Assembly: GCF_032444005.1 (NCBI RefSeq)
Contig: NC_091285.1
Location: 19,592,001-19,656,000, forward strand
Direction of reading: 5' to 3'
Length of the DNA: 64,000 nt
Origin: Ranitomeya imitator
Taxonomy: Eukaryota
Both the position numbers and the translations under genes were made by a program. Positions 3,010 through 59,596 of this stretch are shown piece after piece; the first letter of the stretch is position 1; each line of letters begins with the position of its first letter. Under the pieces are notes generated by a model that searched no databases, was not told where the DNA came from, and saw only the letters and a list, made by a program, of their open reading frames with translations.

Positions 3010-4739
3010 GTGCCATCCCTGTGTGTGCCATCTCTCTCACATAGTGGGCCATAGAAAGCCTTTTCATTTTTCTGTATTTTTTTTTGTGGGGTGTATAAAT
3101 TCTCCCTGATAAAAATACAGTGGGAGATTAATATTGGCCTTTGGGCTTGTGTGCCAGTCCTGAGTGTGCCATCTCTCTCACAAATAGTGGGCCATAGAAA
3201 GCCTATTTAATTTTTTTTTTGGTTTTATAAATTTTCCCTGAAAAAAGGGAGATTAATATTGGCCTCTGGGCTTGTGTGCCAGTTGTGAGCGTGCCATCTG
3301 TGCCAGTCCTGAGCGTGCCATCTCTCTCACAAATAGTGGGCCATAGAAAGCCTATTTAATTTTTTTTTTGGTTTTATAAATTTTCCCTGAAAAAAGGGAG
3401 ATTAATATTGGCCTCTGGGCTTGTATGCCAGTTGTGAGCGTGCCATCTGTGCCAGTCCTGAGCGTGCCATCTCTCTCACAAATAGTGGGCCATAGAAAGC
3501 CTATTTAATTTTTTTTTTGGTTTTATAAATTTTCCCTGAAAAAAGGGAGATTAATATTGGCCTCTGGGCTTGTGTGCCAGTTGTGAGCGTGCCATCTGTG
3601 CCAGTCCTGAGCGTGCCATCTCTCTCACAAATAGTGGGCCATAGAAAGCCTATTTAAATATTTTTTTGGTTTTATAAATTCTCCCAGAAAAAAAGGGAGA
3701 TTAATATTGGCCTCTGGGCTTCTGTGCCAGTCCTGAGCGTGCCATCTGTGCCAGTCCTGAGCGTCCCATCTCTCACACAAATAGTGGGCCATAGAAAGCC
3801 TATTTAATTTTTTTTTTGGTTTTATAAATTTTCCCTGAAAAAAGGGAGATTAATATTGGCCTCTGGGCTTGTGTGCCAGTTGTGAGCGTGCCATCTGTGC
3901 CAGTCCTGAGCGTGCCATCTCTCTCACAAATAGTGGGCCATAGAAAGCCTATTTAAATATTTTTTTGGTTTTATAAATTCTCCCAGAAAAAAAGGGAGAT
4001 TAATATTGGCCTCTGGGCTTCTGTGCCAGTCCTGAGCGTGCCATCTGTGCCAGTCCTGAGCGTCCCATCTCTCTCACAAATAGTGGGCCATAGAAAGCCT
4101 ATTTAATTTTTTTTTTGGTTTTATAAATTTTCCCTGAAAAAAGGGAGATTAATATTGGCCTCTGGGCTTGTGTGCCAGTTGTGAGCGTGCCATCTGTGCC
4201 AGTCCTGAGCGTGCCATCTCTCTCACAAATAGTGGGCCATAGAAAGCCTATTTAAATTTTTTTTTGGTTTTATAAATTCTCCCAGAAAAAAAGGGAGATT
4301 AATATTGGCCTCTGGGCTTCTGTGCCAGTCCTGAGCGTGCCATCTGTGCCAGTCCTGAGCGTCCCATCTCTCTCACAAATAGTGGGCCATAGAAAGCCTA
4401 TTTTTTTTTTGGGGGGGGTTTTAGAAATTCTCCCTGGAAAAAAAAAGGGAGATTAATATTGCCCTTTGGGCTTGTGTGCCAGTACTAAGCGTTCCATCTC
4501 TCTCTCTCTCTCTTAGTCAGTGGGCCATAGAACGCCTATTTTTGGTTTTATTTGTTTTCTAAATTCTCCCTGAAAAAATCATTTTATTTTATTTGGTTTC
4601 TAAATTCTTCCTGATAAAATCATATTTTTTTTATTATTTTTTTTTCTAAAGTCTCCCTGAAAAAAAAAAAAAAAAAAAAAAAACAGTGGGAGATTAATAT
4701 TGGCCTTTCTGCTTGTGTGCCAGTCTTGACTCCTGGGTG

Positions 4740-5954: not shown

Positions 5955-8900
5955 ATGAGGAAGTCTAGTGGAAGAGGTCGTGGCCGGGGGCGTTCATTGT
6001 CAGCTGGTAATGAGGGTAGTGGTAGTGGTGGAGCATCAGGTGGTCGTGGGGAAAAAAATATTGCACCTAAGTCTGGAGCTGTGGAGCCAGGTTCGTCGTC
6101 CGGCTACACAAGGCCTCGAACGCTCCCTTTTCTGGGATTAGGAAAACCGCTTTTAAAGCCGGAGCAGCAAGAGCAAGTTTTGGCTTATCTTGCTGACTCA
6201 GCCTCTAGCTCTTTTGCCTCCTCTCGTGAAACTGGTAAAAGTAAAAGCAGCGCGTCGTTAGTGGATGTTCACGGTCAGGGACAAGTCACTTCCTTGTCCT
6301 CTTCAGCAAAAACAACAACAGAGAAGAATGCAGCAGGCGACACAACGGGTTACTCCATGGAGCTCTTTACACATACCGTCCCTGGCTTAGAAAGTGAAGC
6401 AGTTAACAGTCCATGCCCATTACAAATTGAATCTGACATGGAGTGCACTGACGCACAGCCACAGCCAGACTACTATGCTGGTCCTTTGACTCAGACCACA
6501 ACATTGCCCTCGCAGGGTGCTGATCAAGAATCAGACCCTGATGAGACTATGTTGCCCCATCACGAACGCTATACCACCGAACGACACGGTGACACAGACG
6601 AAGTTGCGCAGGAGGTACAAGAAGAGTTATTAGATGACCCAGTTCTTGACCCCGATTGGCAGCCATTGGGGGAACAGGGTGCAGGCGGCAGCAGTTCTGA
6701 AGCAGAGGAGGAGGAGGGGCCGCAGCAGGCATCAACATCGCCACAGGTTCCATCTGCCGGGCCCGTATCTTGCCCAAAACGCGTGGCAAAGCCAAAACCT
6801 GGTGGAGGACAGCGTGGCCATCCGGTTAAAGCTCAGTCTGCAATGCCTGAAAAGGTATCCGATGCTAGAAAGAGTGCAGTCTGGCATTTTTTTAAACAAC
6901 ATCCAATTGATCAGCGCAAAGTCATCTGTCAAAAATGTTCTACTTCCTTAAGCAGAGGACACAAAAGAGAATGGTAAAACCAAAAACACTCAGTTTGAAA
7001 AAATGTTTGCAGTAATCCGCAAGTGCTAGTAAAAGATGTAAATAACAGGGTATTTGGTTGATACGTTTTTTGCAAAAAATGTATACTAAGCTGCTCTACC
7101 AATCTTCACGGTATACCCATATCAGAGCAGTCCTAACTAATGTATGCAATCCCTATCTGATGTATTTAAAAACCTGATCATCTGTATATTGCCTGTGTGA
7201 ACAGGGTTCAGAGAGGAAAAATCCATGTGTGCATACAGGGCAGAACAGCTTTTGTGCAGCTAGCCCAAGAGGAGTGGTGGAACTCCCCAGTCTTGTAGAC
7301 ACAAGAGAACAATTATGGAAACAGGAACACATGGGCTACTTGCACAGTGAACAAGTCTGTAAGAACATGTTCACACACCACCAAGAAACCTGAAGACACA
7401 AAAGAGAATGGTAAAACCAAAAACACTCAGTTTGAAAAAATGTTTGCAGTAATCCGCAAGTGCTAGTAAAAGATGTAAATAACAGGGTATTTGGTTGATA
7501 CGTTTTTTGCAAAAAATGTATACTAAGCTGCTCTACCAATCTTCACGGTATACCCATATCAGAGCAGTCCTAACTAATGTATGCAATCCCTATCTGATGT
7601 ATTTAAAAACCTGATCATCTGTATATTGCCTGTGTGAACAGGGTTCAGAGAGGAAAAATCCATGTGTGCATACAGGGCAGAACAGCTTTTGTGCAGCTAG
7701 CCCAAGAGGAGTGGTGGAACTCCCCAGTCTTGTAGACACAAGAGAACAATTATGGAAACAGGAACACATGGGCTACTTGCACAGTGAACAAGTCTGTAAG
7801 AACATGTTCACACACCACCAAGAAACCTGAAGACACAAAAGAGAATGGTAAAACCAAAAACACTCAGTTTGAAAAAATGTTTGCAGTAATCCGCAAGTGC
7901 TAGTAAAAGATGTAAATAACAGGGTATTTGGTTGATACGTTTTTTGCAAAAAATGTATACTAAGCTGCTCTACCAATCTTCACGGTATACCCATATCAGA
8001 GCAGTCCTAACTAATGTATGCAATCCCTATCTGATGTATTTAAAAACCTGATCATCTGTATATTGCCTGTGTGAACAGGGTTCAGAGAGGAAAAATCCAT
8101 GTGTGCATACAGGGCAGAACAGCTTTTGTGCAGCTAGCCCAAGAGGAGTGGTGGAACTCCCCAGTCTTGTAGACACAAGAGAACAATTATGGAAACAGGA
8201 ACACATGGGCTACTTGCACAGTGAACAAGTCTGTAAGAACATGTTCACACACCACCAAGAAACCTGAAGACACAAAAGAGAATGGTAAAACCAAAAACAC
8301 TCAGTTTGAAAAAATGTTTGCAGTAATCCGCAAGTGCTAGTAAAAGATGTAAATAACAGGGTATTTGGTTGATACGTTTTTTGCAAAAAATGTATACTAA
8401 GCTGCTCTACCAATCTTCACGGTATACCCATATCAGAGCAGTCCTAACTAATGTATGCAATCCCTATCTGATGTATTTAAAAACCTGATCATCTGTATAT
8501 TGCCTGTGTGAACAGGGTTCAGAGAGGAAAAATCCATGTGTGCATACAGGGCAGAACAGCTTTTGTGCAGCTAGCCCAAGAGGAGTGGTGGAACTCCCCA
8601 GTCTTGTAGACACAAGAGAACAATTATGGAAACTGTTTCCATAATTGTTCTCTTGTGTCTACAAGACTGGGGAGTTCCACCACTCCTCTTGGGCTAGCTG
8701 CACAAAAGCTGTTCTGCCCTGTATGCACACATGGATTTTTCCTCTCTGAACCCTGTTCACACAGGCAATATACAGATGATCAGGTTTTTAAATACATCAG
8801 ATAGGGATTGCATACATTAGTTAGGACTGCTCTGATATGGGTATACCGTGAAGATTGGTAGAGCAGCTTAGTATACATTTTTTGCAAAAAACGTATCAAC

Positions 8901-11900
8901 CAAATACCCTGTTATTTACATCTTTTACTAGCACTTGCGGATTACTGCAAACATTTTTTCAAACTGAGTGTTTTTGGTTTTACCATTCTCTTTTGTGTCT
9001 TCAGGTTTCTTGGTGGTGTGTGAACATGTTCTTACAGACTTGTTCACTGTGCAAGTAGCCCATGTGTTCCTGTTTCCATAATTGTTCTCTTGTGTCTACA
9101 AGACTGGGGAGTTCCACCACTCCTCTTGGGCTAGCTGCACAAAAGCTGTTCTGCCCTGTATGCACACATGGATTTTTCCTCTCTGAACCCTGTTCACACA
9201 GGCAATATACAGATGATCAGGTTTTTAAATACATCAGATAGGGATTGCATACATTAGTTAGGACTGCTCTGATATGGGTATACCGTGAAGATTGGTAGAG
9301 CAGCTTAGTATACATTTTTTGCAAAAAACGTATCAACCAAATACCCTGTTATTTACATCTTTTACTAGCACTTGCGGATTACTGCAAACATTTTTTCAAA
9401 CTGAGTGTTTTTGGTTTTACCATTCTCTTTTGTGTCTTCAGGTTTCTTGGTGGTGTGTGAACATGTTCTTACAGACTTGTTCACTGTGCAAGTAGCCCAT
9501 GTGTTCCTGTTTCCATAATTGTTCTCTTGTGTCTACAAGACTGGGGAGTTCCACCACTCCTCTTGGGCTAGCTGCACAAAAGCTGTTCTGCCCTGTATGC
9601 ACACATGGATTTTTCCTCTCTGAACCCTGTTCACACAGGCAATATACAGATGATCAGGTTTTTAAATACATCAGATAGGGATTGCATACATTAGTTAGGA
9701 CTGCTCTGATATGGGTATACCGTGAAGATTGGTAGAGCAGCTTAGTATACATTTTTTGCAAAAAACGTATCAACCAAATACCCTGTTATTTACATCTTTT
9801 ACTAGCACTTGCGGATTACTGCAAACATTTTTTCAAACTGAGTGTTTTTGGTTTTACCATTCTCTTTTGTGTCTTCAGGTTTCTTGGTGGTGTGTGAACA
9901 TGTTCTTACAGACTTGTTCACTGTGCAAGTAGCCCATGTGTTCCTGTTTCCATAATTGTTCTCTTGTGTCTACAAGACTGGGGAGTTCCACCACTCCTCT
10001 TGGGCTAGCTGCACAAAAGCTGTTCTGCCCTGTATGCACACATGGATTTTTCCTCTCTGAACCCTGTTCACACAGGCAATATACAGATGATCAGGTTTTT
10101 AAATACATCAGATAGGGATTGCATACATTAGTTAGGACTGCTCTGATATGGGTATACCGTGAAGATTGGTAGAGCAGCTTAGTATACATTTTTTGCAAAA
10201 AACGTATCAACCAAATACCCTGTTATTTACATCTTTTACTAGCACTTGCGGATTACTGCAAACATTTTTTCAAACTGAGTGTTTTTGGTTTTACCATTCT
10301 CTTTTGTGTCTTCAGGTTTCTTGGTGGTGTGTGAACATGTTCTTACAGACTTGTTCACTGTGCAAGTAGCCCATGTGTTCCTGTTTCCATAATTGTTCTC
10401 TTGTGTCTACAAGACTGGGGAGTTCCACCACTCCTCTTGGGCTAGCTGCACAAAAGCTGTTCTGCCCTGTATGCACACATGGATTTTTCCTCTCTGAACC
10501 CTGTTCACACAGGCAATATACAGATGATCAGGTTTTTAAATACATCAGATAGGGATTGCATACATTAGTTAGGACTGCTCTGATATGGGTATACCGTGAA
10601 GATTGGTAGAGCAGCTTAGTATACATTTTTTGCAAAAAACGTATCAACCAAATACCCTGTTATTTACATCTTTTACTAGCACTTGCGGATTACTGCAAAC
10701 ATTTTTTCAAACTGAGTGTTTTTGGTTTTACCATTCTCTTTTGTGTCTTCAGGTTTCTTGGTGGTGTGTGAACATGTTCTTACAGACTTGTTCACTGTGC
10801 AAGTAGCCCATGTGTTCCTGTTTCCATAATTGTTCTCTTGTGTCTACAAGACTGGGGAGTTCCACCACTCCTCTTGGGCTAGCTGCACAAAAGCTGTTCT
10901 GCCCTGTATGCACACATGGATTTTTCCTCTCTGAACCCTGTTCACACAGGCAATATACAGATGATCAGGTTTTTAAATACATCAGATAGGGATTGCATAC
11001 ATTAGTTAGGACTGCTCTGATATGGGTATACCGTGAAGATTGGTAGAGCAGCTTAGTATACATTTTTTGCAAAAAAACGTATCAACCAAATACCCTGTTA
11101 TTTACATCTTTTACTAGCACTTGCGGATTACTGCAAACATTTTTTCAAACTGAGTGTTTTTGGTTTTACCATTCTCTTTTGTGTCTTCAGGTTTCTTGGT
11201 GGTGTGTGAACATGTTCTTACAGACTTGTTCACTGTGCAAGTAGCCCATGTGTTCCTGTTTCCTTAAGCAGAGGTCAGAATCTGAAAAGTCTCAATACTA
11301 GTTGCATGCATAGACATTTAACCACCATGCATTTGAAAGCTTGGACTAACTACCAAACGTCCCTTAAGGTTGTTGCACCCTCGGCCAATGAAGCTAGTCA
11401 TCAACGCAACATCCCTTCCGGCAGTGTAGGACCACCATTTAGCGCACCACCTGCTGTATCTGTGCAGGTATCTTTGCCAGGCCAAAGCAGTCAGGGTCAG
11501 GGAATCACCAGTTTCGTAGTAGGAAACACTGCATCTAGGGCACCGGCGGCAACAATACCATCTCCCACCGTCTCTCAGTCTGCCATGTCCACCGGCACCC
11601 CCGCTAGTTCCACGATCTCCATCTCTCCAGTCCAGCTCACCCTACATGAGACTATGGTTAGAAAAAGGAAGTACTTAGCCTCGCATCCGCGTACACAGGG
11701 TTTGAACGCCCACATAGCTAGACTAATCTCGTTAGAGATGATGCCCTACCGGTTAGTTGAAAGCGAAGCTTTCAAAGACCTGATGGACTACGCTGTACCA
11801 CGCTACGAGCTACCCAGTCGACACTTTTTTTCCAGAAAAGCCATCCCAGCCCTCCACCAGCATGTTAAAGAGCGCATCGTCCATGCACTCAGGCAATCTG

Positions 11901-13849
11901 TGAGCACAAAGGTGCACCTGACAACAGATGCATGGACCAGTAGGCATGGCCAGGGACGTTACGTGTCCATCACGGCACACTGGGTAAATGTGGTGGATTC
12001 AGGGTCCACAGGGGACAGCAAGTTTGGGACAGTTCTGCCTAGCCCACGGTCTAGTAAACAGTTGTCTGTAGCCGTTCGCACCCCCTCCTCCTCCTCCTCC
12101 TCCTCGTCCTCCTGCAGAAGCAAGAGCTCGTCCACAGACCGCAGTCGCACAAACACTCCATCCGCACCTGCCACTGTTGCACACCAGGTCTCCCATTATG
12201 GGGCAGCTACTGGCATACGTCAGCAGGCTGTATTGGCTATGAAGTGTTTGGGCGACAATAGACACACCGCGGAAGTTCTGTCCGAGTTCTTGCAGCAAGA
12301 AACGCAGTCGTGGCTGGGCACTGTAGATCTTGAGGCAGGCAAGGTAGTGAGTGATAACGGAAGGAATTTCATGGCTGCCATCTCCCTTTCCCAACTGAAA
12401 CACATTCCTTGCCTGGCTCACACCTTAAACCTGGTGGTGCAGTGCTTCCTGAAAAGTTATCCGGGGTTATCCGACCTGCTCCTCAAAGTGCGTGGACTTT
12501 GCGCACATATCCGCCGTTCGCCTGTACACTCCAGCCGTATGCAGACCTATCAGCGTTCTTTGAACCTTCCCCAGCATCGCCTAATCATAGACGTTGCAAC
12601 AAGGTGGAACTCAACACTGCACATGCTTCAGAGACTGTGCGAACAGAGGCGGGCTGTTATGTTTTTGTGGGAGGATACACATACACGGGCAGGCAGTAGG
12701 ATGGCAGACATGGAGTTGTCAGGTGTGCAGTGGTCGAAGATTCAAGACATGTGTCAAGTCCTTCAGTGTTTTGAGGAATGCACACGGCTGGTTAGTGCAG
12801 ACAACGCCATAATAAGCATGAGCATCCCCCTAATGCGTCTGCTGATGCAAAGTTTGACGCACATAAAGGATCAGGCGTCTGCACCAGAGGAAGAGGAAAG
12901 CCTTGATGACAGTCAGCGATTGTCTGGTCAGGGCAGTGTACATGACGAGGTACCGGGCGAAGAGGAGGTGGAGGATGAGGAGGATGATGGGGATGAGTAT
13001 ATTTTTAATGAGGAAGCTTTCCCGGGGGCACGGGAAATTGGTGGCGTGGCAAGGCCGGGTTCTGGTTTTTTGAGGGACACAAGTGACGTAGATTTGCCTG
13101 CAACTGCCCCTCAACCAAGCACAACCGCAGATTTGACAACGGGAACTTTGGCCCACATGGCGGATTATGCCTTGCGTATCCTCAAAAGGGACACACGCAT
13201 TACAAAAATGATGAACGATGACGATTACTGGTTGGCCTGCCTCCTTGATCCTCGCTATAAAGGCAAATTGCAAAATATTATGCCACATGAGAACTTGGAA
13301 CTAATATTAGCAACAAAACAATCAACTCTTGTTGACCGTTTGCTTCTGGCATTCCCTGCACACAGCGCCCGTGATCGTTCTCACACGAGCTCCAGGGGCC
13401 AGCAGACCAGAGGTGTTAGAGGGGCAGAAATCAGAAGTGGCGTTGGCCAGAGGGGTTTTCTGACCAGGTTGTGGAGTGATTTTTCTATGACCGCAGACAG
13501 GACAGGTACTGCAGCATCAATTCAAAGTGACAGGAGACAACATTTGTCCAGTATGGTTACAAACTATTTTTCATCCCTTATCGACGTTCTCCCTCAAACG
13601 TCATTCCCATTTGATTACTGGGCATCCAAATTAGACACCTGGCCAGAATTGGCAGAATATGCATTGCAGGAGCTTGCTTGCCCGGCAGCTAGTGTCCTAT
13701 CAGAAAGAGTATTCAGTGCTGCAGGTTCAATACTAACAGAAAAAAGGACTCGTCTGGCTACCCAAAATGTAGATGATCTAACCTTCATTAAAATGAACCA
13801 CAACTGGATTTCAAAATCTTTTGCCCCACCCTGCCCGGCTGACACCTAG
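5955..13849 (+). pseudogene. hAT transposase (ZBED-like: BED zinc finger, DDE core, dimerisation domain), interrupted by the 437-bp array
   Basis: Joining 5955-6958 to 11275-13849 restores one 1192-aa ORF. BED finger SAVWHFF...CQKCSTSLSRG|QNLKSLNTSCMHRHLTTMH, then LTTDAWTS, VSDNG, CLAH, TRWNST and SERVFS motifs, all present. Confidence 0.93.
6959..11263. repeat. Fold-back tandem array of a 437-bp unit (3.83 units, a 1-nt apex at 8634, then 6 inverted units)
   Basis: Identical 67-aa ORFs recur every 437 bp on minus (7336, 7773, 8210) and then on plus (8855-10603). Apex caattatggaaac-t-gtttccataattg. Flanked by a duplicated TTCCTTAAGCAGAGG at 6944-6958 and 11260-11274. Confidence 0.97.
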
Positions 13850-14299: not shown

Positions 14300-17200
14300 T
14301 TGTTTTGACATTTTTGTTATGTTAGGCCTTCGAAGCCTGTCTGCGGTCACTCCTTCCACTAGACTTCCACTGACCAGACCACTGCTGCCCGTGTACCCCT
14401 GGAACCAATTTAAAATTGCCTACAGCCATGTGTTAATATTTTAGGCCTTCGATGCCTGTCTGTGGTCACTCCTTCCACTAGGCCTCCACTGACCACACCA
14501 CTGCTGCCCGTGTACCCCTGGAACCAATTTAAAATTGCCTACAGCCATGTGTGATTATTTTAGGCCTTCGATGCCTGTCTGCGGTCACTCCTTCCACTAG
14601 GCCTCCACTGACCTGTCTACTGCGGCCCGTGTACCCCTTGAACCAACCTAATAAAATATTTAAAAAATTAATTTGATTATAAAAAATAAGATCGTGTTGA
14701 GATCTCAAATGCAGACATTTTAACATTAAAAACAAACACACAACAAAAATCTGGAACTGTACTAAAAAGGTCCACCAGCTACAATTACTTTCTCCTGCAA
14801 GAAGTTAACTGAAAGGTTTTTTTGGAGTTGTTAACACAGATATGGCATCCACCGAGTGTTGTCCTGTCGCGTCTCCTTTAAATTATTTCCAATAAGATGT
14901 TAAACTATTAATTTAATAAAATCAATAATTAAAAAAATAATTGAGTAAGTCAAAAGCACATTGCAAATAAACATTAATTACAAATCAAGAAGCATGGCGC
15001 GTCCGAGGGTGAGTAGATACCGAATAAGAATATAATCACCCTCGGGCGCGCAATGCTTATTTACAACAGCCTTCCTTCCTAAGAATCAGCCCTTCCGTGG
15101 TGTAGAGAGAGGTTGTTGTTACACTCCAAGGTGTTCCCCAGGTTGCCTTTCCTGAGCTTCGATCTTCCGGCTCTCGTTTAGTAGCTGTTGGAAACTACGC
15201 TGCATTAGGCCTACAAATTGTGTATGGGTGAAACAGTGGCGCATCTGCGGTCCCTCCTTCCACTAGGCCTCCACTGACCTGTCTACTGCTGCCCGTGTAC
15301 CCCTTGAACCAACATCTTAAAATAAAAAAATAATTATTTTGATTATAAAAAAGAAGATACTGGTGAGATCTCAAATGCAGACATTTTAACATTGAAAACA
15401 AACACACAACAAAAATCTGGAACTGTACTAAAAAGGTCCACCAGCTACAATTACTTTCTCCTGCAAGAAGTTAACTGAAAGGTTTTTTTGGAGTTGTTAA
15501 CACAGATATGGCATCCACCGAGTGTTGTCCTGTCGCGTCTCCTTTAAATTATTTCCAATAAGATGTTAAACTATTAATTTAATAAAATCAATAATTAAAA
15601 AAATAATTGAGTAAGTCAAAAGCACATTGCAAATAAACATTAATTACAAATCAAGAAGCATGGCGCGTCCGAGGGTGAGTAGATACCGAATAAGAATATA
15701 ATCACCCTCGGGCGCGCAATGCTTATTTACAACAGCCTTCCTTCCTAAGAATCAGCCCTTCCGTGGTGTAGAGAGAGGTTGTTGTTACACTCCAAGGTGT
15801 TCCCCAGGTTGCCTTTCCTGAGCTTCGATCTTCCGGCTCTCGTTTAGTAGCTGTTGGAAACTACGCTGCATTAGGCCTACAAATTGTGTATGGGTGAAAC
15901 AGTGGCGCATCTGCGGTCCCTCCTTCCACTAGGCCTCCACTGACCTGTCTACTGCTGCCCGTGTACCCCTTGAACCAACATCTTAAAATAAAAAAATAAT
16001 TATTTTGATTATAAAAAAGAAGATACTGGTGAGATCTCAAATGCAGACATTTTAACATTAAAAACAAACACACAACAAAAATCTGGAACTGTACTAAAAA
16101 GGTCCACCAGCTACAATTACTTTCTCCTGCAAGAAGTTAACTGAAAGGTTTTTTTGGAGTTGTTAACACAGATATGGCATCCACCGACTGTTGTCCTGTC
16201 GCGTCTTCTTTATATTATTGCCAAGAAGATGTTAAACAATGAAATTAATAAAATCAATAATTACAAAAATAATCGAGTAAGTCAAAAGCACATTGCAAAT
16301 AAACATTCATTACAAATAAAGAAGCAGGGCGCGTCCGAGGGTGAGTATATACCTACTAAGAATATAATCACCCTCGGACGCGCAATGCTTATTTCCAACA
16401 GCCTTCCTTCCTAAGAATCAGCCCTTCCGTGGTGTAGAGAGAGGTTGTGTTACACTCCAAGGTGTTCCCCAGGTTGCCTTTCCTGAGCTTCGATCTTCCG
16501 GCTCTCGTTTAGTAGGTGTCGGAAAGTAGGCTGCATTAGGCCTAAAAAATGGGGAATGGGGTGGAGAGAGATGGTGTGTTACACTCCAAGGTGTTCTCCA
16601 GGTTTCCTCGCCATTGCTTCGATCTTCCGACTCTCGTTTAGTAGTTGTAGAAAACTACACTGCATTAGGCCTACAAAATGGGTATCGGGTGGAGAGAGAT
16701 GGTGTGTTACACTCCAAGGTGTTCCCCAGGTTTCCTTGCCATTGCTTCGGTCTTCCGACTCTCGTTTAGTAGTTGTAGAAAAGTACACAGCATTAGGCCT
16801 ACAAAATGGGTATGGGGTGGAGAGAGATGGTGTGTTACACTCCAAGGTGTTCCCCAGGTTGCCTTTCCTGAGCTTCTATCTTCAGGCTCTCATTAAATTG
16901 TGGTTAAATGGAACAACTGCATTTGGCGTACTAGTTGGTTTGGGGCCTACTATCGGTGTCTGCCACTCCTTGCTGTTCTCCTGGTTTCCTGTCCTGAAAT
17001 TCCATTTTCAGCCTCTCGTTAAGTAGTTGTTAATGTTAGACTGCATTTGGCCTACTAGTTGGGTTGGGGCCTACTATCGGTGTCTGCCACTCCTTGCTGT
17101 TCTCCTCCACTGAACAAAGCTGTGCCGCCTGTTTACTACGGTTGCCAATTTTGAACTGCATTTCGACTACTTACTGATTTGGCCCTACTCTCTGTGTCAG

Positions 17201-18152: not shown

Positions 18153-19328
18153 GTGCAGTCCCGTCTGGCTGCTGGTAAGCTTGTTTTTTATCGTCGCTTC
18201 ATAGACAATCTCTTTTTAATTTGGACAGGCACTGAATTGGAAGCCCTTGAATTTGTTCACAGTCTCAACTCTAATTCTTGGGGTCTTACCTCCACAGCTA
18301 ATTTCTCACGCTCCTCAATTCAATTTTTAGATCTAATGGTACATGTTGACACTGAGGGCTTTTTCTCCACCACTACACACTTTAAAAAGGTGGATGTGAA
18401 TAGTTACTTGAATTTTAATAGTGGACACCTTCCCAAATGGATCCTTAACGTCCCGTATGGGCAGCATTGGCGCATAAGAAAAAATTGCACAAGAGACAAG
18501 GATTTTTTTGAAGAGCAACGTTTTTTACAGAAAGGCTACCCTAAAAAACTGGTTCAAGATGCCCTTTCTAAAACAGGAATATTGTCCAAATATGAATGTA
18601 TACAGAAAATTAAAAGTAAAACTAGTAGGGGTGCTAAATCTGTGACCTCTGAATTTGCCAAGTGGAGCTTGGTTACAACTTTTAATCAATCTCATGCTAC
18701 TATCCAAAGACTTTTGAAAAAATATTGGTTCATATTGGAAGGTGACCCGATATTCTCAGGTCACATCCCTACCCACCCCAGAATAATTTATAGGCGGAAT
18801 CGCACACTCCGCAACCTAGTTGCACCCAGCAATACAGTTATTAGCCCCAGTGCCACATCCGCGACCCAGCTAACAAAAAATCCCAGCTGTTTTGCTTGCA
18901 GATCTGCAAAATGTCTGTGTTGTAACTCCATCAGAAATGGTGTTAAAGAATTCACATCCAATACTACTAATATTAATTACAGAATCAACTACCATGTTAA
19001 CTGTCAATCCTCATTTGTAGTATATCTAATAGAATGCGGATCTGGGCTCCAATATGTTGGACGGACTATACAGACCATGCACGCAAGACTGAAGAAGCAT
19101 CGCCAAAATATTAGGAATGGTTTTATGTTGCATAGCCTATCAAAGCATTTTTTAACCAAGCACCAAAAAAATTTAGAATCTCTGAAACTGACGATTATAG
19201 ATTTTATACCAGAAAATGTATCTGATCGGTATGGGAGCTTGATTAATAGGGAAAGTTTCTGGATTTTTAAGTTGGGGACTCTGGCGCCTGAAGGGTTAAA
19301 TCTTACTATTGAAAGGGTTAACAAGTGA
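18153..19328 (+). pseudogene. Penelope-like RT C-terminus and GIY-YIG endonuclease (5' truncated)
   Basis: YRRFIDNLFLIW (YxDD-like motif, last D changed to N), linker LLKKYWFILEGDP...RRNRTLRNLV, CxxxxCxxC, VVYLIEC...YVGRT...RLKKH, LAPEGLN. Confidence 0.85.
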
Positions 19329-19645: not shown

Positions 19646-20016
19646 TTCAACACTAAAATCCTTGTTTTGGTCTCATTTCCAGCGCTCCTAGGACCGTTAT
19701 TACTATTTACAGCTATGCGTTTATGTCATAGTTTTACAATCAATTTATGTCATTTTGCGTGAACCCTTTCCCCACCATGATGTATATTTATGTAAAATTT
19801 CATGAAGGGGTTAATAAAAAAATAAATAACCCATTAAAGGAAGTGATACATTTCTGTAATTAGGGTCTTTGCCCCTAAATCATGATTCTCTCAGAGGGGT
19901 ATAAAAAATCTCGTGCCAGATTATTCAAGAAGTTAAGTGAATGGGTGCAACTATAACATTGCTAAGTATTGAGTAATAGACACTTTCAGTTTCATTTCTT
20001 CCTTCTTCCGTCAGCC

Positions 20017-21624
20017 ATGGCGTCTGCTGATCTGAGGGAAGAGCTGCTCTGCTCCATCTGTCTGAGCACTTATACAGATCCTGTAATGCTGAGATGTGGA
20101 CACAACTTCTGCCGGGTCTGTATTGGTCGTGTGCTGGATACACAGGACGAGTCTGGAATTTATTCCTGTCCTGTATGCAGAGAAGAGTTTCAGCAGCGGC
20201 CGACACTGATGAGGAACTTATATCTTCATAATGTCGCAGAACGTTTCCTGATTACTCAGCAAGAACAAGAGGAGATCACCGGGATCTGCTGCACTTACTG
20301 TGTGGACTCTCCGGTACCTGCTGTTAGATCCTGTCTACACTGTGAGGCTTTTCTGTGTGATAAACACCTGAGATCTCACAGCAAATCACCAGAACACGTC
20401 TTATCTGATCCCAGCACTTCTCTGGAGAAAAGGAAATGTTCTGTCCATAAAAAGATCCTGGAATATTACTGCACTGAGGACGCTGCTTGTATCTGTGTGT
20501 CCTGCAGTTTGGCCGGAGAACATCGGGGACACCAGGTGGAGATACTGAATGAGGCCTCAGAGAAGAAGAAGAAGAAATGGAGAAATGTTCTGCAGAAACT
20601 GATCACAAAGAGAGAGAAGACTAAGGAAAGAGTCCGGAGTCTGGAGGAGCAGAGGAGAAAAGCTCAAGAAAAAGCAGCTGGAGAAGCCGAGAGAGTCACT
20701 GCCCTGTGTACAGACATCAGGAGACGGGTGGACGACCTGGAGAAGATGGTCCTGAGTGAGATCTCCAGGCAGGAGAAGGAAGAGTCACTGTCACTGTCTG
20801 CTCTGATCCATCAGCTGGAAATAAAGAAGGACGAGCTGTCCAGGAAGATGAGACACATTGAGGAGCTGTGTAACATGATGGATCCACTGACTGTCTTACA
20901 GGAACCAGACACCGGTGACTTGTGTGATCCTGAGGAGGAGGGAGGTGATGAGGACACAGGAGGACATGATAAACAGCCCCATGATGGAGATGACCTGGAT
21001 GTGGCTGTGATCTCACACACATTACACACATTATGTGAGGTAATATCAGGTATAAGGAGCGGGATCTATGTGGTGAGTCCTGCAGACATATTACTGGATG
21101 TAACCACAGCTGATAATAATGTCCGTATATCAGACGACCTGAAAACTGCAACCTGGACAGAAGAGAATCAGAAACGTCTTGAAACAGCAGAGAGATTCCA
21201 GAAATATAATCAGGTGATGAGCAGGAGAGGATTTACCTCAGGACGACATTACTGGGATGTGGAGACCAGGAGATCAGGGTGGTCAATAGTGGGGATGTGT
21301 TATCCCAGTATAGACAGGAGGGGAGGTCAGTCACTGATTGGAAATAATAACAAGTCCTGGAGTTTGTGGAGATCTAATAATCAGTATTCAGTGAGACATG
21401 ACAGTAAAGAGATCTGGTTACCTGACAAGATCTCCAGTGATAGAGTCAGGATATATCTGGATTATGAGGCCGGGCAGTTGTCCTTTTATGAGCTGTGTGA
21501 CCCCATCAGACACTTACACACCTTCACTGCCACCTTCTCCGAGCCCCTTCATGCTATATTATATGTATATGAAGGTTCTATAAAGATATTAGGGGGAAGA
21601 AGTAACTGGGTGAAACCACTATAA
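20017..21624 (+). CDS. TRIM E3 ubiquitin ligase, 535 aa (RING-Bbox1-Bbox2-CC-PRY/SPRY), single coding exon
   Basis: CSIC...CGHNFCRVC...CPVC RING, CTYC...CLHC...CDKH B-box1, CSVH...C B-box2, PRY-SPRY. ATG in gccATGG context; the TTG start at 19969 in the ORF track is an upstream in-frame extension. Confidence 0.95.
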   Translation: MASADLREELLCSICLSTYTDPVMLRCGHNFCRVCIGRVLDTQDESGIYSCPVCREEFQQRPTLMRNLYLHNVAERFLITQQEQEEITGICCTYCVDSPVPAVRSCLHCEAFLCDKHLRSHSKSPEHVLSDPSTSLEKRKCSVHKKILEYYCTEDAACICVSCSLAGEHRGHQVEILNEASEKKKKKWRNVLQKLITKREKTKERVRSLEEQRRKAQEKAAGEAERVTALCTDIRRRVDDLEKMVLSEISRQEKEESLSLSALIHQLEIKKDELSRKMRHIEELCNMMDPLTVLQEPDTGDLCDPEEEGGDEDTGGHDKQPHDGDDLDVAVISHTLHTLCEVISGIRSGIYVVSPADILLDVTTADNNVRISDDLKTATWTEENQKRLETAERFQKYNQVMSRRGFTSGRHYWDVETRRSGWSIVGMCYPSIDRRGGQSLIGNNNKSWSLWRSNNQYSVRHDSKEIWLPDKISSDRVRIYLDYEAGQLSFYELCDPIRHLHTFTATFSEPLHAILYVYEGSIKILGGRSNWVKPL

Positions 21625-34641: not shown

Positions 34642-36249
34642 ATGGCTTCTGCTATTCTGAAAGACGAGCTGCTCTGCTCCATCTGTTTATCTACATTTAA
34701 GGACCCTATAACACTGAAATGTGGACACAACTTCTGCCGGGTCTGTATTGGTCGTGTGCTGGATACGCAGGACGGGTCTGGAGTTTATTCCTGTCCTGAC
34801 TGCAGAGAAGAGTTTCAGGAGCGGCCGACACTGATGAGGAACATAAATCTCCATAATGTCGCAGAACGTTTCCTGATTACTCAGCAAGAACAAGACGAGA
34901 TCACTGGGATCTACTGCACTTACTGTGTGGACTCTCTGGTACCTGCTGTTAGATCCTGTCTACTCTGTGAGGCTTCTCTGTGTGATAAACACCTGAGATC
35001 TCACAGCAAATCACCAGGACACGTCTTATCTGATCCCAGCACTTCTCTGGAGAAAAGGAAATGTTCTGTCCATAAGAAGATCCTGGAATATTACTGCACT
35101 GAGGACGCGGCTTGTATCTGTGTGTCCTGCAGTTTGATCGGGAAACATAATGGACATAAAATGGAGTCACTGGATGAGGCCGCAGGGAAGAAAAAGAAAA
35201 AATGGAGAAATGTCGTCCAGAAACTGATCACAAAGAGAGAGAAGACTGAGGAAAGAGTCCGGAGTCTGGAGGAGCAGAGGAGAAAAGCTCAAGAAAAAGC
35301 AGCTGGAGAAGCCGAGAGAGTCACTGCCCTGTGTACAGACATCAGGAGACGGGTGGACGACCTGGAGAAGAAGGTCCTGAGTGAGATCTCCAGGCAGGAG
35401 AAGGAAGAGTCACTGCCACTGTCTGCTCTGATCCATCAGCTGGAAATAAAGAAGGACGAGCTGTCCTGGAAGATGAGACACATTGAGGAGCTGTGTAACA
35501 TGACGGATCCACTGACTGTCTTACAGGAACCAGACACCGGTGACTTGTGTGATCCTGAGGAGGAGGGAGGTGATGAGGACACAGGGGGACATGATAAACA
35601 GCCCCATGATGGAGATGACCTGGATGTGGCTGTGATCTCACACACATTACACACATTATGTGAGGTAATATCAGGTATAAGGAGCGGGATCTATGTGGTG
35701 AGTCCGGCAGACATATTACTGGATGTAACCACAGCTGGTAATAATGTCCTTATATCAGACGACCTGAAAACTGCAACCTGGACACGAGAGAATCAGAAAC
35801 GTCCAGAAACAGCAGAAAGATTCCTGGGTTATAGTCAGGTGATGAGCAGGAGAGGATTTACCTTAGGACGCCATTACTGGGATGTGGAGATCAGTAGATC
35901 AGGGTGGTGGAGGGTGGGGATGTGTTATCCCAGTATAGACAGGAGCGGAGATCAGTCACTGATTGGAAGAAATAACAAGTCCTGGAGTTTGAGGAAATAT
36001 AATAATCAGTATTCAGTGAGACATGACAGTAAAGTGATCCGGTTACCTGACAAGATCTCCAGTGATAGATTCAGGATATGTCTGGATTATGGGGCCGGGC
36101 AGTTGTCCTTTTATGAGCTGTGTGACCCCATCAGACACTTACACACCTTCACTGCCACCTTCTCCGAGCCCCTTCATGCTGTATTATATGTATGTGAAAG
36201 TTCTATAAAGATATTAGAGGGAAGAAGTAACTGGGTGAAACCATCATAA
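34642..36249 (+). CDS. TRIM E3 ubiquitin ligase, 535 aa (RING-Bbox1-Bbox2-CC-PRY/SPRY)
   Basis: Intact ORF with the same domain order as 20017. A pyrimidine tract and CAG lie directly before ccATG. Confidence 0.95.
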   Translation: MASAILKDELLCSICLSTFKDPITLKCGHNFCRVCIGRVLDTQDGSGVYSCPDCREEFQERPTLMRNINLHNVAERFLITQQEQDEITGIYCTYCVDSLVPAVRSCLLCEASLCDKHLRSHSKSPGHVLSDPSTSLEKRKCSVHKKILEYYCTEDAACICVSCSLIGKHNGHKMESLDEAAGKKKKKWRNVVQKLITKREKTEERVRSLEEQRRKAQEKAAGEAERVTALCTDIRRRVDDLEKKVLSEISRQEKEESLPLSALIHQLEIKKDELSWKMRHIEELCNMTDPLTVLQEPDTGDLCDPEEEGGDEDTGGHDKQPHDGDDLDVAVISHTLHTLCEVISGIRSGIYVVSPADILLDVTTAGNNVLISDDLKTATWTRENQKRPETAERFLGYSQVMSRRGFTLGRHYWDVEISRSGWWRVGMCYPSIDRSGDQSLIGRNNKSWSLRKYNNQYSVRHDSKVIRLPDKISSDRFRICLDYGAGQLSFYELCDPIRHLHTFTATFSEPLHAVLYVCESSIKILEGRSNWVKPS

Positions 36250-44715: not shown

Positions 44716-47700
44716 CAGGGGTGCATTAAGGGTAGCCAGGGCCCCGGGCTGTTCACACACTGTGGGCATGTGACGGGGGTCATGTGACGGGGGTCATGTG
44801 ACGGGGGTCATGTGACGGGGGTCATGATATACCCGAACCAGATTATACCAGAAAAATGTCCGGGCCCTACTCTACTGTAACCTATTAAATATTTGTTAAA
44901 ATCTGCAATACAATTTAGGTATATCTTGACCAATAATATCACATACAAGGAACAAATACAACCGCACCGTGACCAGATCACAAATTACAACCACAGTGAT
45001 CGAATAATATCACATACAAGGAACAAATACCACAACACCATGTCAAGACCACATATTACCACTTGGTGACCAAATAGCACATACAAGGGACAAATACCAC
45101 AACACCATTTCCAGACCACATATTACCACCACATAGTGACTGAGTACCACAATACTGATCAGTAATATAAAAACAAAAACACAATACTATCACCATAAGT
45201 GCCAGTATTCACAGGAGATCTGTACTTAGTATGCAGTGTCTGTGTAGAGGTAATACTGAGATCACTGGTGGTATTATACACAGGACCTCTATATAGTATA
45301 CAGTGTATAGTGTCAGTGTATAGGTAACACGGACTCACCAGTGACGTCTCTAGGTGAAGTCCTTCATCTTTCATCCAGCACAGACCGCCATCATTCCTTC
45401 CAGCCAGGACTCGTTTCTGCAGGAAATAACACAGTTATCTCGAGCTCCACTTGCAGAACACATTACTTAATTTTTCACAACTTCTACATTACACCACATG
45501 AAGATAAAAAGGCGATATAGTGTCACTCTGCACAATAACAGGACCGCCCCCCCATTTAAAACAGTATACTCAAAAAATAAAATAAATACATCACTGCAGT
45601 AACAATATCCCTTAATTAGCCCCTATGGTAATAATATTCCCCACCCTGGCTCCGTTTATCGCATTCCTGGCTCCAGCCATATGTTCTCCCATCCTGCACT
45701 CATGAGTATCCATTCTACCCCATATGATCTCCACATCCTGCCCCATCTGTCTCCATCGTATCCATCCTGCCCCATGTCTCCAATCATGCCCCGTGTCTAC
45801 ATTCTGCCCATGCCTCCAGTCCTGCCCCCAGTGTGTCCAGCATATTACCCTCAGTGTGTCCAGCATATTACCCCCAGTGTGTCCAGCAATCTGCCCCAGT
45901 ATGTCCAGCATATTGCCCCCAGACAGTGTGTCCAGCAATCTGCCCCAGTGTGTCCAGCATATTACCACCAGTGTGTCCAGCAATCTGGCCCAGTGTCTCC
46001 AGCATTGCCCCAGTGTGTCCAGCAATCATCTGCCCCAGTGTATCCAGCATTGCCCCAGTGTGTCCAGCAATCATCTGCCCCAGTGTCTCCAGCAATCATC
46101 TGCCCCAGTGTCTCCAGCAATCTGCCCCAGTGTCTCCAGCAATTTGCCCCAGTGTCTCCAGCAATCTGCCCCCAGTGTGTCCTCCAGCAATCTGCCCCCA
46201 GTGTGTCCTCCAGCAATCTGCCCCCAGTGTGTCCTCCAGCAATCTGCCCCACTGTCTCCAGCATTGCCCCACTGTCTCCAGCAATCTGCCCCACTGTCTC
46301 CAGCAATCTGCCCCCAGTGTGTCCTCCAGCAATCTGCCCCCAGTGTGTCCTCCAGCAATCTGCCCCCAGTGTGTCCTCCAGCAATCTGCCCCCAGTGTGT
46401 CCTCCAGCAATCTGCCCCCAGTGTGTCCTCCAGCAATCTGCCCCACTGTCTCCAGCAATCTGCCCCACTGTCTCCAGCAATCTGCCCCACTGTCTCCAGC
46501 ATTGCCCCCCAGTGTGTCTTCCAGCATTGCCCCCCAGTGTGTCCTCCAGCAATCTGCCCCACTGTCTCCAGCATTGCCCCACTGTCTCCAGCATTGCCCC
46601 CAGTGTGTCCTCCAATCTGCCCCAGTGTCTCCAGCATTGCCCCCCAGTGTGTCCTCCAATCTGCCTCACTGTCTCCAGCAATCTGCCCCACTGTCTCCAG
46701 CAATCTGCCCCACTGTCTCCAGCAATCTGCCCCACTGTCTCCAGCAATCTGCCCCACTGTCTCAAGCAATCTGCCCCACTGTCTCCAGCAATCTGCCCCA
46801 CTGTCTCCAGCAATCTGCCCCACTGTGTCCTCCAGCATTGCCCCCCCAGTGTCCTCCAATCTGCCCCACTGTCTCCAGCATTGCCCCCAGTGTGTCCTCC
46901 AATCTGCCCAGTGTCTCCAGCATTGCCCCCCAGTGTGTCCTCCAATCTACCCTACTGTCTCCAGCATTGCCCCCAGTGTGTCCTCCAATCTGCCCCAGTG
47001 TCTCCAGCATTGCCCCCAGTGTGTCCTCTAATCTGCCCTACTGTCTCCAGCATTGCCCCCAGTGTGTCCTCCAATCTGCCCTACTGTCTCCAGCATTGCC
47101 CCCCAGTGTGTCCTCCAATCTGCCCCAGTGTCTCCAGCATTGCCCCCAGTGTGTCCTCCAATCTGCCCCAGTGTCTCCAGCATTGCCCCCAGTGTGTCCT
47201 CCAATCTGCCCCACTGTCTCCAGCATTGCCCCCAGTGTGTCCTCCAATCTGCCCTACTGTCTCCAGCATTGCCCCCCAGTGTGTCCTCCAATCTGCCCCA
47301 GTGTCTCCAGCATTGCCCCCCAGTGTGTCCTCCAATCTGCCCCAGTGTCTCCAGCATTGCCCCCAGTGTGTCCTCCAATCTGCCCCAGTGTCCTCCAGCA
47401 TTGCCCCCCAGTGTGTCCACCGCACCGATAATAACTGATCCAAAAAAAAAAAACAGTCTCCTCACCTGTCCACGCTCCAGGCGGCGAGCTGCTCCCTTCT
47501 GCAGCACACTCGCCGGCGACTGACAATGACGTCAGACGCCGGCGACGTGTGCGCTGCGGCCGACATCAGCTGCCAGCCTCCAATTGGCTGGCGGCTGGTG
47601 TTGTTAACTATTGATGTGCGGGCGCACGCCCGCACATCAATAGGAAACCGCCGCAGCGCCGGAAGGGGCCCGGTGAGCAGATGAGAAGGGGCCCAATGCG

Positions 47701-57316: not shown

Positions 57317-58927
57317 ATGGCGTCTATTGATCTGAGAGATGAGCTGCTCTGCGCCATCTGTTTATCCACGTTTAAGGACCCTGTAATGCTGAGATGTGGA
57401 CACAACTTCTGCCGGGTCTGTATTGGTCGTGTGCTGGATACACAGGACGAGTCTGGAGTTTATTCCTGTCCTGAATGCAGAAAAAGATTTCAGGAGCGTC
57501 CGGCACTGATGAGGAACATAAATCTCCATAATGTCGCAGAACGTTTCCTGATTACTCAGCAAGAACAAGAGGAGATCACCGGGATCTGCTGCACTTACTG
57601 TGTGGACTCTCCGGTACCTGCTGTTAGATCCTGTCTACACTGTGAGGCTTCTCTGTGTGATAAACACCTGAGGGTTCACAGCAAATCACCAGAACACGTC
57701 TTATCTGATCCCAGCACTTCTCTGGAGAAAAGGAAATGTTCTGTCCATAAGAAGATCCTGGAATATTACTGCACCGAGGACGCGGCTTGTATCTGTGTGT
57801 CCTGCTGTTTGATTGGGGAACATCGTGGACACCGGGTGGAGATGCTGGATGAGACCTCAGAGAAGAAGGAGAAACTGAGAAATGTTCTGCAGAAACTGAT
57901 CACAAAGAGAGAGAAGACTGAGGAAAGAGTCCGGAGTCTGGAGGAGCGCAAGAGAAAAGCTCAAGAACAAGCAGCTGGAGAAGCCGAGAGAGTCACTGCC
58001 CTGTGTACAGACATCAGGAGACGGGTGGACGACCTGGAGAAGAAGGTCCTGAGTGAGATCTCCAGGCAGGAGAAGGAAGAGTCACTGTCACTGTCTGCTC
58101 TGATCCATCAGCTGGAAATAAAGAAGGACAAGCTGTCCAGGAAGATGAGACACATTGAGGAGCTGTGTAACATGACGGATCCACTGACTGTCTTACAGGA
58201 ACCAGACACCGGTGACTTGTGTGATCCTGAGGAGAAGGGAGATGATGAGGACACAGGAGGACATGATAAACAGCCCCATGATGGAGATGACCTGGATGTG
58301 GCTGTGATCTCACACACATTACACACATTATGTGAGGTAATATCAGGTATAAGGAGCGGGATCTATATGGAGGATCCTGCAGACATATTACTGGATATAA
58401 ACACGGCTGATAATAATCTCCTTATATCAGACGACCTGAAAACTGCAACCTGGACACAAGAGAATCAGAAACGTCCAGAAACAGCAGAGAGATTCCAGTA
58501 TAACAATCAGGTGATGAGCAGGAGAGGATTTACCTCAGGACGACATTACTGGGATGTGGAGGGCAGTAGATCAAGGTCGTATATAGTGGGGATGTGTTAT
58601 CCCAGTATAGACAGGAGGGGGAGTCAGTCAGCAATTGGAGGAAATAATAACAAGTCCTGGAGTTTGTGGAGATATAATAATAATCAGTATCTTGTGAGAC
58701 ATGACAGGAAAGTGATCTGGTTACCTGACAAGATCTCCAGTGATAGAGTCAGGATATGTCTGGATTATGAGGCCGGGCAGTTGTCCTTTTATGAGCTGTG
58801 TGACCCCATCAGACACTTACACACCTTCACTGCCACCTTCTCCGAGCCCCTCCATGCTATATTATGTGTATGTCATGGTTCTATAAAGGTATTAGGGAGA
58901 AGCAGAAACTGGAAGAAACCATCATAA
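57317..58927 (+). CDS. TRIM E3 ubiquitin ligase, 536 aa (RING-Bbox1-Bbox2-CC-PRY/SPRY)
   Basis: Intact ORF with the same domain order. A pyrimidine tract and CAG precede ccATG. Confidence 0.95.
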   Translation: MASIDLRDELLCAICLSTFKDPVMLRCGHNFCRVCIGRVLDTQDESGVYSCPECRKRFQERPALMRNINLHNVAERFLITQQEQEEITGICCTYCVDSPVPAVRSCLHCEASLCDKHLRVHSKSPEHVLSDPSTSLEKRKCSVHKKILEYYCTEDAACICVSCCLIGEHRGHRVEMLDETSEKKEKLRNVLQKLITKREKTEERVRSLEERKRKAQEQAAGEAERVTALCTDIRRRVDDLEKKVLSEISRQEKEESLSLSALIHQLEIKKDKLSRKMRHIEELCNMTDPLTVLQEPDTGDLCDPEEKGDDEDTGGHDKQPHDGDDLDVAVISHTLHTLCEVISGIRSGIYMEDPADILLDINTADNNLLISDDLKTATWTQENQKRPETAERFQYNNQVMSRRGFTSGRHYWDVEGSRSRSYIVGMCYPSIDRRGSQSAIGGNNNKSWSLWRYNNNQYLVRHDRKVIWLPDKISSDRVRICLDYEAGQLSFYELCDPIRHLHTFTATFSEPLHAILCVCHGSIKVLGRSRNWKKPS

Positions 58928-59085
58928 TTTAAAGGGAAGGTCCCACCAGTTTTCTTGTAGTTTTTTTTTTTTTTGTGAAATTAAGCTTAAAATTTTAATT
59001 AAAATGTATTAATGCAATGTGTGCACTGTTTGCAAACATTTCTATATGAAAAATATTATATTATTTCTTACAAATATACATATTT

Positions 59086-59596
59086 GAAACAAGAAAAGAA
59101 AACAGTGCGGCACTCACCCTTATTATTTGAAGCTGTGAAATCGTGCTCTTTATTGGAGAAAAATGTATAAAACATCCATTAGGACATCAGGTCAGCGAGA
59201 GGGTGCGGAGGTGGAGTGTGGACGACGGCCGTTTCGCACGGTATGTGCTTCAACGGGTCCAACGGGAACTGGACCCGTTGAAGCACATACCGTGCGAAAC
59301 GGCCGTCGTCCACACTCCACCTCCGCACCCTCTCGCTGACCTGATCTCCTAATGGATGTTTTATACATTTTTCTCCAATAAAGAGCACGATTTCACAGCT
59401 TCAAATAATAAGGGTGAGTGCCGCACTGTTTTCTTTTCTTGTTTCATCGTATTTACTCTGGATTGCATATCAGTGCTGAGCACCATATACCCAGAACATT
59501 CGTGCCACCTGCGTATTTTTCGGATGTTCTTTAAGGAGTGTATGTCCATATTGATTTGTGCTTCTCTAGTGCCGTCCATTGCTCATTCTGTGTGTT
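59086..59596 (+). mobile_element. Penelope-like pLTR insertion with a 5' fold-back (177-bp arms, 8-nt loop)
   Basis: Arms 59085-59261 and 59270-59446 with 1 mismatch. TSD aaatata(c/t)atattt at 59072-85 and 59597-610. Absent from the paralogous flank at about 551-566. Contains aataaa, a gggtgagt donor and a hammerhead-like fold. Confidence 0.85.
59270..59312 (+). ncRNA. Hammerhead-like fold with variant core (mirrored on minus at 59219-59261)
   Basis: TGGAC-CCGTTGA-a-GCAC(atacc)GTGC-GAAA-CGGCCG-TC-GTCCA. Stems intact; the core differs from CUGANGA at two positions. Confidence 0.6.

Follow-up and report, generated by a model that had tools for sequence, protein, structure and literature searches.

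A fold-back array of a 437-bp repeat inserted into a hAT transposase ORF of Ranitomeya imitator and its resemblance to Penelope-like element insertions

The window analysed here is a stretch of 64,000 nucleotides from Ranitomeya imitator (assembly GCF_032444005.1, contig NC_091285.1, positions 19,592,001 to 19,656,000). It contains on its plus strand an open reading frame (ORF) for a hAT/BED transposase, which is interrupted by a fold-back array of a 437-bp repeat. The 5' part of this ORF (5955..6958) matches zf-BED, and the 3' part (11275..13849) encodes a hAT dimerisation domain. If 5955-6958 is joined to 11275-13849, whereby the insert and one copy of a 15-mer are removed, the frame is restored and a single ORF of 1192 aa is obtained, in which the only stop is the terminal one. 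The insert is positioned within the BED finger of the transposase.

The 15-mer TTCCTTAAGCAGAGG is found exactly twice in the 64 kb, at 6944 and at 11260, while about 6e-5 chance matches are expected. The two copies (6944..6958 and 11260..11274, neither assigned to a strand) form an exact target site duplication (TSD) of 15 bp. Moreover, the empty site with a single 15-mer is seen in contigs of paralogous hAT copies from public DNA runs, which carry two organism labels (A and B). In a contig of 222 nt (X6 record 18) position 6959 is directly followed by 11276, loose ends at 6958 (X5, X8) run on into the right flank, and a loose end at 11260 (X1) is preceded by the left flank. Since the TSD is exact, the transposase frame is restored and the site is found empty in other contigs, the insertion is real and is the product of a single, recent event; that the target ORF is intact and the ten units are identical indicates a very young one. 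The hAT family is present in very high copy number under both organism labels. With its complete ORF of 1192 aa and its high copy number the transposase may stem from a recently active hAT transposon. Arrays of 149/299-bp, 119-bp, 128-bp and 666-bp repeats flank the hAT element at 3150-4499 and 14318-17106; they may be hAT subterminal repeats or separate satellites.

Between the TSD copies lie 4301 bp (6959-11259), which consist of 9.83 units of 437 bp with a G+C content of 40%. Not a single substitution distinguishes the units, the sole difference being one extra A. In the following, positions within the unit are given as phases, which are 0-based and counted in the orientation of the left arm, with 6959-7395 as the reference unit. 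The left arm (6959..8633, 1675 nt; putative RNA sense on the minus strand) comprises three full units plus 364 nt, each 100% identical to the reference unit, and was also detected by TRF with a period of 437 and 3.8 copies. It extends from phase 0 at its outer end, which has no tail and is referred to below as start site A, to phase 363 at its inner end. The orientation flips at a single unstranded T (8634), around which the sequence forms a perfect palindrome whose arms measure 1676 nt; this apex base is also consistent with phase 364 of the cDNA of the right arm. The right arm (8635..11259, 2625 nt; putative RNA sense on the plus strand) is built from exactly six reverse-complement units. 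It runs from phase 363 at the apex to phase 362 at the junction, so that it starts and ends at the same phase, and its only deviation is an A7 in place of A6 at 11071-11077 in the outermost unit. The right outer end, start site B, shares a 4-nt overlap (TTCC/GGAA) with the target. By phase arithmetic the outer ends are 75 nt apart, and the 75 nt between the two putative start sites (11185..11259, plus strand, phases 436 down to 362) form a tail which is present at the right outer end only.

These findings bear out the initial annotation of the locus, which had been made from the sequence by eye. It had described the 4301-bp insert between two identical target copies, about 9.8 identical units with one extra A in the last, the 1-nt apex with a right arm of six units beginning and ending at the same phase, and the microhomology of TTCC on the right and a weak match (cagagg versus ctgaag) on the left. 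Its statement that poly-A, terminal inverted repeats (TIRs) and credible coding capacity are lacking likewise holds: neither poly-A nor TIRs are found in the insert, and the longest ORF over a trimer of the unit has 71 aa, which leaves the unit non-coding.

At the right junction it is the bottom strand that is attached to the target 3'-OH and at the left junction the top strand, and these are the same strand of the unit. Under target-primed reverse transcription both complementary DNAs (cDNAs) would therefore have been made from RNA of a single sense whose 3' ends pointed outward. Since the starts are 75 nt apart in phase, the right end bears a 75-nt extension which is absent at the left. The predicted nicks, 15 bp apart and each read on its own strand, lie in the contexts GCAGAGG^TCAGAA and TAAGGAA^GTAGAA and share the motif ..RR^NNAGAA. 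Two nicks in the same motif would fit cleavage by a symmetric dimer, in this single case. The motif itself (purines, nick, NNAGAA; 6932-6958 and 11275-11286) may be a symmetric recognition site of the integrating enzyme.

The 437-bp unit is not restricted to this locus. In one run of organism A 1408 contigs match the unit at 85-100% identity, and runs under two further organism labels contain it as well, so that at least three organism labels are represented; that these runs are RNA is only a guess. Judging from these contigs, the unit is a member of a high-copy, diverged repeat family and no one-off template. Contigs of 1612, 597 and 478 nt match the unit only at phases ~355-437 and then end. 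Loose ends reveal another element which has the sequence from phase ~355 through ~10 in common with the unit and is unrelated on both sides. The unit therefore consists of a private body of ~345 nt and a module of ~93 nt that it has in common with an element of more than 1.6 kb. One instance of this module, delimited by the contigs and loose ends, is located at 8988..9080 on the plus strand (phases 10 to 0, then 436 to 355) and includes a stem-loop at 9020-9047. The insert has its two outer ends, at phases 362 and 0, within the module and a few nt away from where this stops. At phase 362 exactly, other members of the family give way to unrelated flanking sequence, as seen for a loose end at 9073 (X6, organism A) and likewise for a contig from organism C (X20). 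Contigs from several runs break at phases ~0 and ~357, which indicates that the sequence contexts diverge there. Many apparent skips between the arms were also noticed in the contig placement; with sides of 20-25 nt they are placement noise caused by the repeats and were not used, and depth was not taken as a measure of copy number either. Neither blastn (word sizes 11 and 7) nor nhmmer revealed relatives of the unit or the module in the rest of the window, and a search for further genomic copies through called ORFs, by exact look-up and homology search, has none on record. A reconstructed 150-nt fragment of the shared module has a stop in every frame.

We also looked for ribozymes. An Rfam search of both strands of the insert at E<=10 gave no ribozyme, but only hairpin- and miRNA-like matches due to the palindrome at the apex, and at gathering level the whole window gave 0 matches. 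E-value scans of 13.8-20 kb and 58.9-59.65 kb returned only miRNA-like matches which are likewise driven by palindromes. A scan of the unit for hammerhead cores (CUGANGA, a helix II of >=3 bp and GAAA, with up to 1 mismatch) had 0 matches on either strand, and the putative RNA-sense strand contains no GAAA at all. Compared with shuffled sequences the folding of the unit RNA has a z-score of -2.7 and that of the module alone -0.7, neither of which is strong evidence for a selected structure.

The arrangement of the insert closely resembles the one known from Penelope-like elements (PLEs; Penelope/Poseidon, Neptune, Naiad and Chlamys, described by Evgen'ev and Arkhipova). PLE insertions consist of partial tandems, next to which a 5'-truncated copy often lies in inverse orientation, and carry a tail at one end only (PMC8557442), and their inverted joints are palindromes, mostly head-to-head (PMC3846280). 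The purified PLE protein PAc cleaves and extends both strands in vitro, and its reverse transcription starts at two adjacent internal sites, the stretch between which is the genomic tail (PMC11167929). The sequences of the pseudo-long terminal repeat (pLTR) suffice to move unrelated DNA in trans (PMC3846280), and non-autonomous PLE riders with a common 3' end give rise to multicopy head-to-tail insertions (PMC8557442). The insert has the head-to-tail tandems and a TSD of the kind that varies in length in PLEs. It also has, within a single TSD, the adjacent inverted 5'-truncated copy with a head-to-head palindromic joint, a tail on one side only that would follow from two start sites (phases 0 and 362), and both target strands as likely primers. 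In contrast to PLEs, it lacks an ORF for a reverse transcriptase (RT) or GIY-YIG endonuclease, it is built from about ten copies of a unit as short as 437 nt, and it has no hammerhead. By this comparison the repeat appears to act like a PLE rider with the full PLE insertion architecture.

We consider it rather probable that a non-coding, ribozyme-free and non-autonomous 437-nt repeat was retro-inserted here recently and in a single event, via the integration route described for PLEs; it is the architecture, and that alone, which points to a PLE enzyme. A dimeric RT/endonuclease would nick both target strands 15 bp apart, and each 3'-OH would prime reverse transcription on RNA of the same sense, which corresponds to the plus strand in the right arm. 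At site B (phase 362) the start would be aided by the 4-nt overlap, while the other start would take place at site A (phase 0), 75 nt upstream in the RNA. Both cDNAs would copy a template that repeats, be it a circle, a multimeric transcript or a series of identical monomers linked by template jumps, and would halt at a common template position, phase 363/364, next to site B. One cDNA would then jump onto the 3' end of the other and copy back, which would create the perfect head-to-head palindrome with its 1-nt centre. The apex would be this short because both cDNAs stop at one template position (363 and 364) before the putative jump. Fill-in of the staggered nicks would finally yield the 15-bp TSD.

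A circular template, a multimeric transcript and repeated jumps between identical monomers fit the data equally well. The identity of the ten units favours repeated copying of one sequence, by way of a circle or of monomer jumps, or else a source array that is equally young. As for the stop beside site B, a shared 5' end of the RNA, a collision with the initiation complex on the upstream unit or a pause after a jump between monomers would each fit. A transcription start at the phase of the apex was considered and rejected, as no TATA-like or initiator (Inr)-like motif lies upstream.

Some of the proposals in the initial annotation are thus strengthened. A single insertion by target-primed reverse transcription agrees with the exact TSD, with the frame that is regained without the insert and with the contigs of the empty site, priming at both nicks is supported, the absence of an obvious ribozyme is confirmed by the Rfam and hammerhead core scans, and the analogy to the inverted pLTRs of Penelope has become the core of the explanation, the layout of fold-back, tandem and tail being a PLE hallmark. 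What had to be given up is the idea of a lone new mobile RNA, since the repeat family of the unit is abundant and diverged and the layout is published for PLEs and their riders.

Several observations speak against an integration by the PLE route. No partner RT/GIY-YIG bearing the shared module was found among the contigs. That a PLE is present in the window, as a fragment with an ORF for a GIY-YIG domain (18153-19328, plus strand), speaks in favour of the PLE route, but this fragment, the only one in the window, resembles neither the 437-bp unit nor the shared module in sequence. The tail of 75 nt is longer than the 30-40 nt published for PLE tails (PMC11167929, PMC8557442), and the target, a single case, is not AT-rich, unlike the preference of PAc and Penelope. 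The route does not by itself account for the stop of both cDNAs at phase 363/364 or for a right arm of exactly six units. The support for site A as a recurrent start comes from contig break points and is indirect. Finally, no short-read contig spans the apex at 8634.

Among the other explanations, priming from one side only deserves attention, although we regard it as unlikely. Here the cDNA begun at the right nick would copy six units, snap back and copy itself for 3.83 units before it is end-joined to the left nick. This agrees with a shorter arm that perfectly reproduces the inner portion of the longer one and with an apex of 1 nt, with a left junction that matches the target by only 1 nt, and with the interpretation of palindromic inverted PLE joints as self-priming by Arkhipova et al. 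2013 (PMC3846280). However, snap-back predicts a random phase at the left end, whereas the actual end lies within 2 nt of a contig break point from several runs (a chance of about 1 in 90) and inside the module in common with the longer element; in addition, a PLE extends both strands in vitro (PMC11167929). Still less likely is the mobilisation of the unit by a long interspersed element (LINE) other than a PLE, as in a stringent pair of a LINE and a short interspersed element (SINE) with a common 3' module, where template jumping would account for the tandem and twin priming for the inversion. TSDs of 15 bp are usual when LINEs prime at their target, many SINEs borrow LINE enzymes through a common 3' module, and no partner of the unit was identified among the contigs. 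On the other hand the insert has neither a poly-A nor a microsatellite tail, its completely overlapping arms, joined as a perfect palindrome, are unlike L1 twin priming, and a tail at one end only and multicopy head-to-tail units are PLE traits.

Three further explanations appear very improbable. At the DNA level, rolling-circle replication with strand switching could have amplified a small circle of the repeat, the product of which was then caught in a staggered chromosome break. Such DNA synthesis is indeed expected to produce identical units and a fold-back, and the contigs of the runs guessed to be RNA give neither strand nor ends nor circles. Yet a staggered break of 15 bp with clean fill-in is unexpected from end-joining capture, and the outer ends coincide with recurrent ends of the family, other copies of which end at the same base against unrelated flanks. 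To about the same slight degree one might believe that the insertion is real but that its inversion, its unit number or both result from chimeric reads or collapse during assembly. The apex crossed by no contig and the trouble which tandem and inverted PLE structures are known to cause in assemblies (PMC8557442) would be in line with that. The tails, however, face outward at both junctions, which forces an internal inversion, the flanks continue one ORF in frame, and a chimera from a missed adapter would mirror the left flank and not resume the right one. Least credible of all is the satellite-birth model, by which the insertion was that of a monomer or dimer and unequal crossover or replication slippage later expanded the array in place, even though this model is favoured for the arrays of retrozymes without long terminal repeats (non-LTR retrozymes) by Li et al. 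2026 (10.64898/2026.07.22.740005). Zero substitutions over 9.83 units, a palindrome that is perfect across 1675 nt and an intact target ORF argue against it, and that both arms expanded after insertion and stayed identical is unlikely in so short a time.

Of the known systems other than PLEs, the metazoan non-LTR retrozymes (Cervera and de la Pena 2020, PMC7229834; Li, Clavereau and Pollet 2026 preprint) come closest to the insert, in that their tandem units are non-coding and a few hundred nt long. Retrozymes are delimited by a unit of ~50-970 nt and a TSD of >4 bp, and the insert has 437 nt in 9.83 copies and a TSD of 15 bp. They are abundant in amphibians and are expressed as monomer RNA, both linear and circular, and copying of a circle into tandem cDNA, one-step integration and mobilisation by PLEs have been proposed for them (PMC7229834; Li et al. 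2026 preprint). However, the type I hammerhead that defines them is absent from both strands of the unit. The insert is therefore by definition not a retrozyme but looks like a hitch-hiking relative that is free of a ribozyme, and self-cleavage or circularisation of its RNA is without evident basis. Nor does the description of retrozymes include a fold-back. MRC1 of Chlamydomonas and similar non-autonomous elements of the Chlamys type (PMC8557442) resemble the repeat in that they have no canonical hammerhead, are similar to an autonomous element at the 3' end only and form multicopy head-to-tail insertions; they are green-alga elements of another PLE clade, whereas the host here is a vertebrate. 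L1 twin priming, which the initial annotation had also brought forward, is similar in its TSDs of 7-20 bp and in an inversion that results from the priming of one-sense RNA by two target 3' ends. It is ruled out as there is no poly-A, the nick motif is not TTTT/AA and the arms overlap fully, in contrast to the non-overlapping segments of L1. A pseudogene derived from a back-spliced circular RNA was dismissed as well, the unit being a high-copy diverged repeat without AG/GT at the unit joints, and so was a Helitron or other rolling-circle DNA transposon, in view of the 15-bp TSD and of ends which do not fit 5'-TC/3'-CTRR with a hairpin.

How PLEs build their tandem and inverted insertions and how retrozyme-type satellites arise are open questions in the field, and one published view favours local amplification after insertion. 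The locus described here is a case of zero divergence, in which both junctions, the TSD and the empty site are intact and about ten units plus a palindrome were laid down in one event. It provides positions at base level for two putative start sites and a common stop, and the apparent rider of a vertebrate achieves this without a hammerhead. Natural insertions of this kind can test the two-strand priming described in vitro. A more specific version of the PLE-type integration is put forward only tentatively. In this version the ribozyme-free 437-nt RNA would parasitise nothing but the ~93-nt start-site module of a PLE and would be copied round and round from both nicks at once, as a circle or by seamless jumps between monomers, until the cDNAs halt at the initiation site and join end-to-end. 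If true, the locus would be an in vivo snapshot of satellite-like arrays, palindromes included, being born in one retrotransposition event, and the hammerhead would be dispensable for such a birth of arrays in vertebrates.

A second, much smaller palindrome is located at 59085-59446, 3' of a TRIM gene. It is 362 bp long and near-perfect (arms of 177 nt, 99%, with an 8-nt spacer). Each arm contains a helix II-like hairpin followed by GAAAC-GGCC-GUC, which is the 3' half of an amphibian/PLE-type hammerhead. Within this palindrome no CUGANGA box, no Rfam hammerhead match and, by eye, no clear TSD were found; it is probably a small truncated twin insertion of a PLE or retrozyme. The window further encodes a cluster of TRIM genes, with three intact RING-B-box-PRY/SPRY ORFs on the plus strand at 19969-21624, 34642-36249 and 57317-58927. 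A minisatellite with a period of 22 bp lies at 45826-47419, where it is repeated about 70 times (79% matches) and overlapped by long spurious ORFs.

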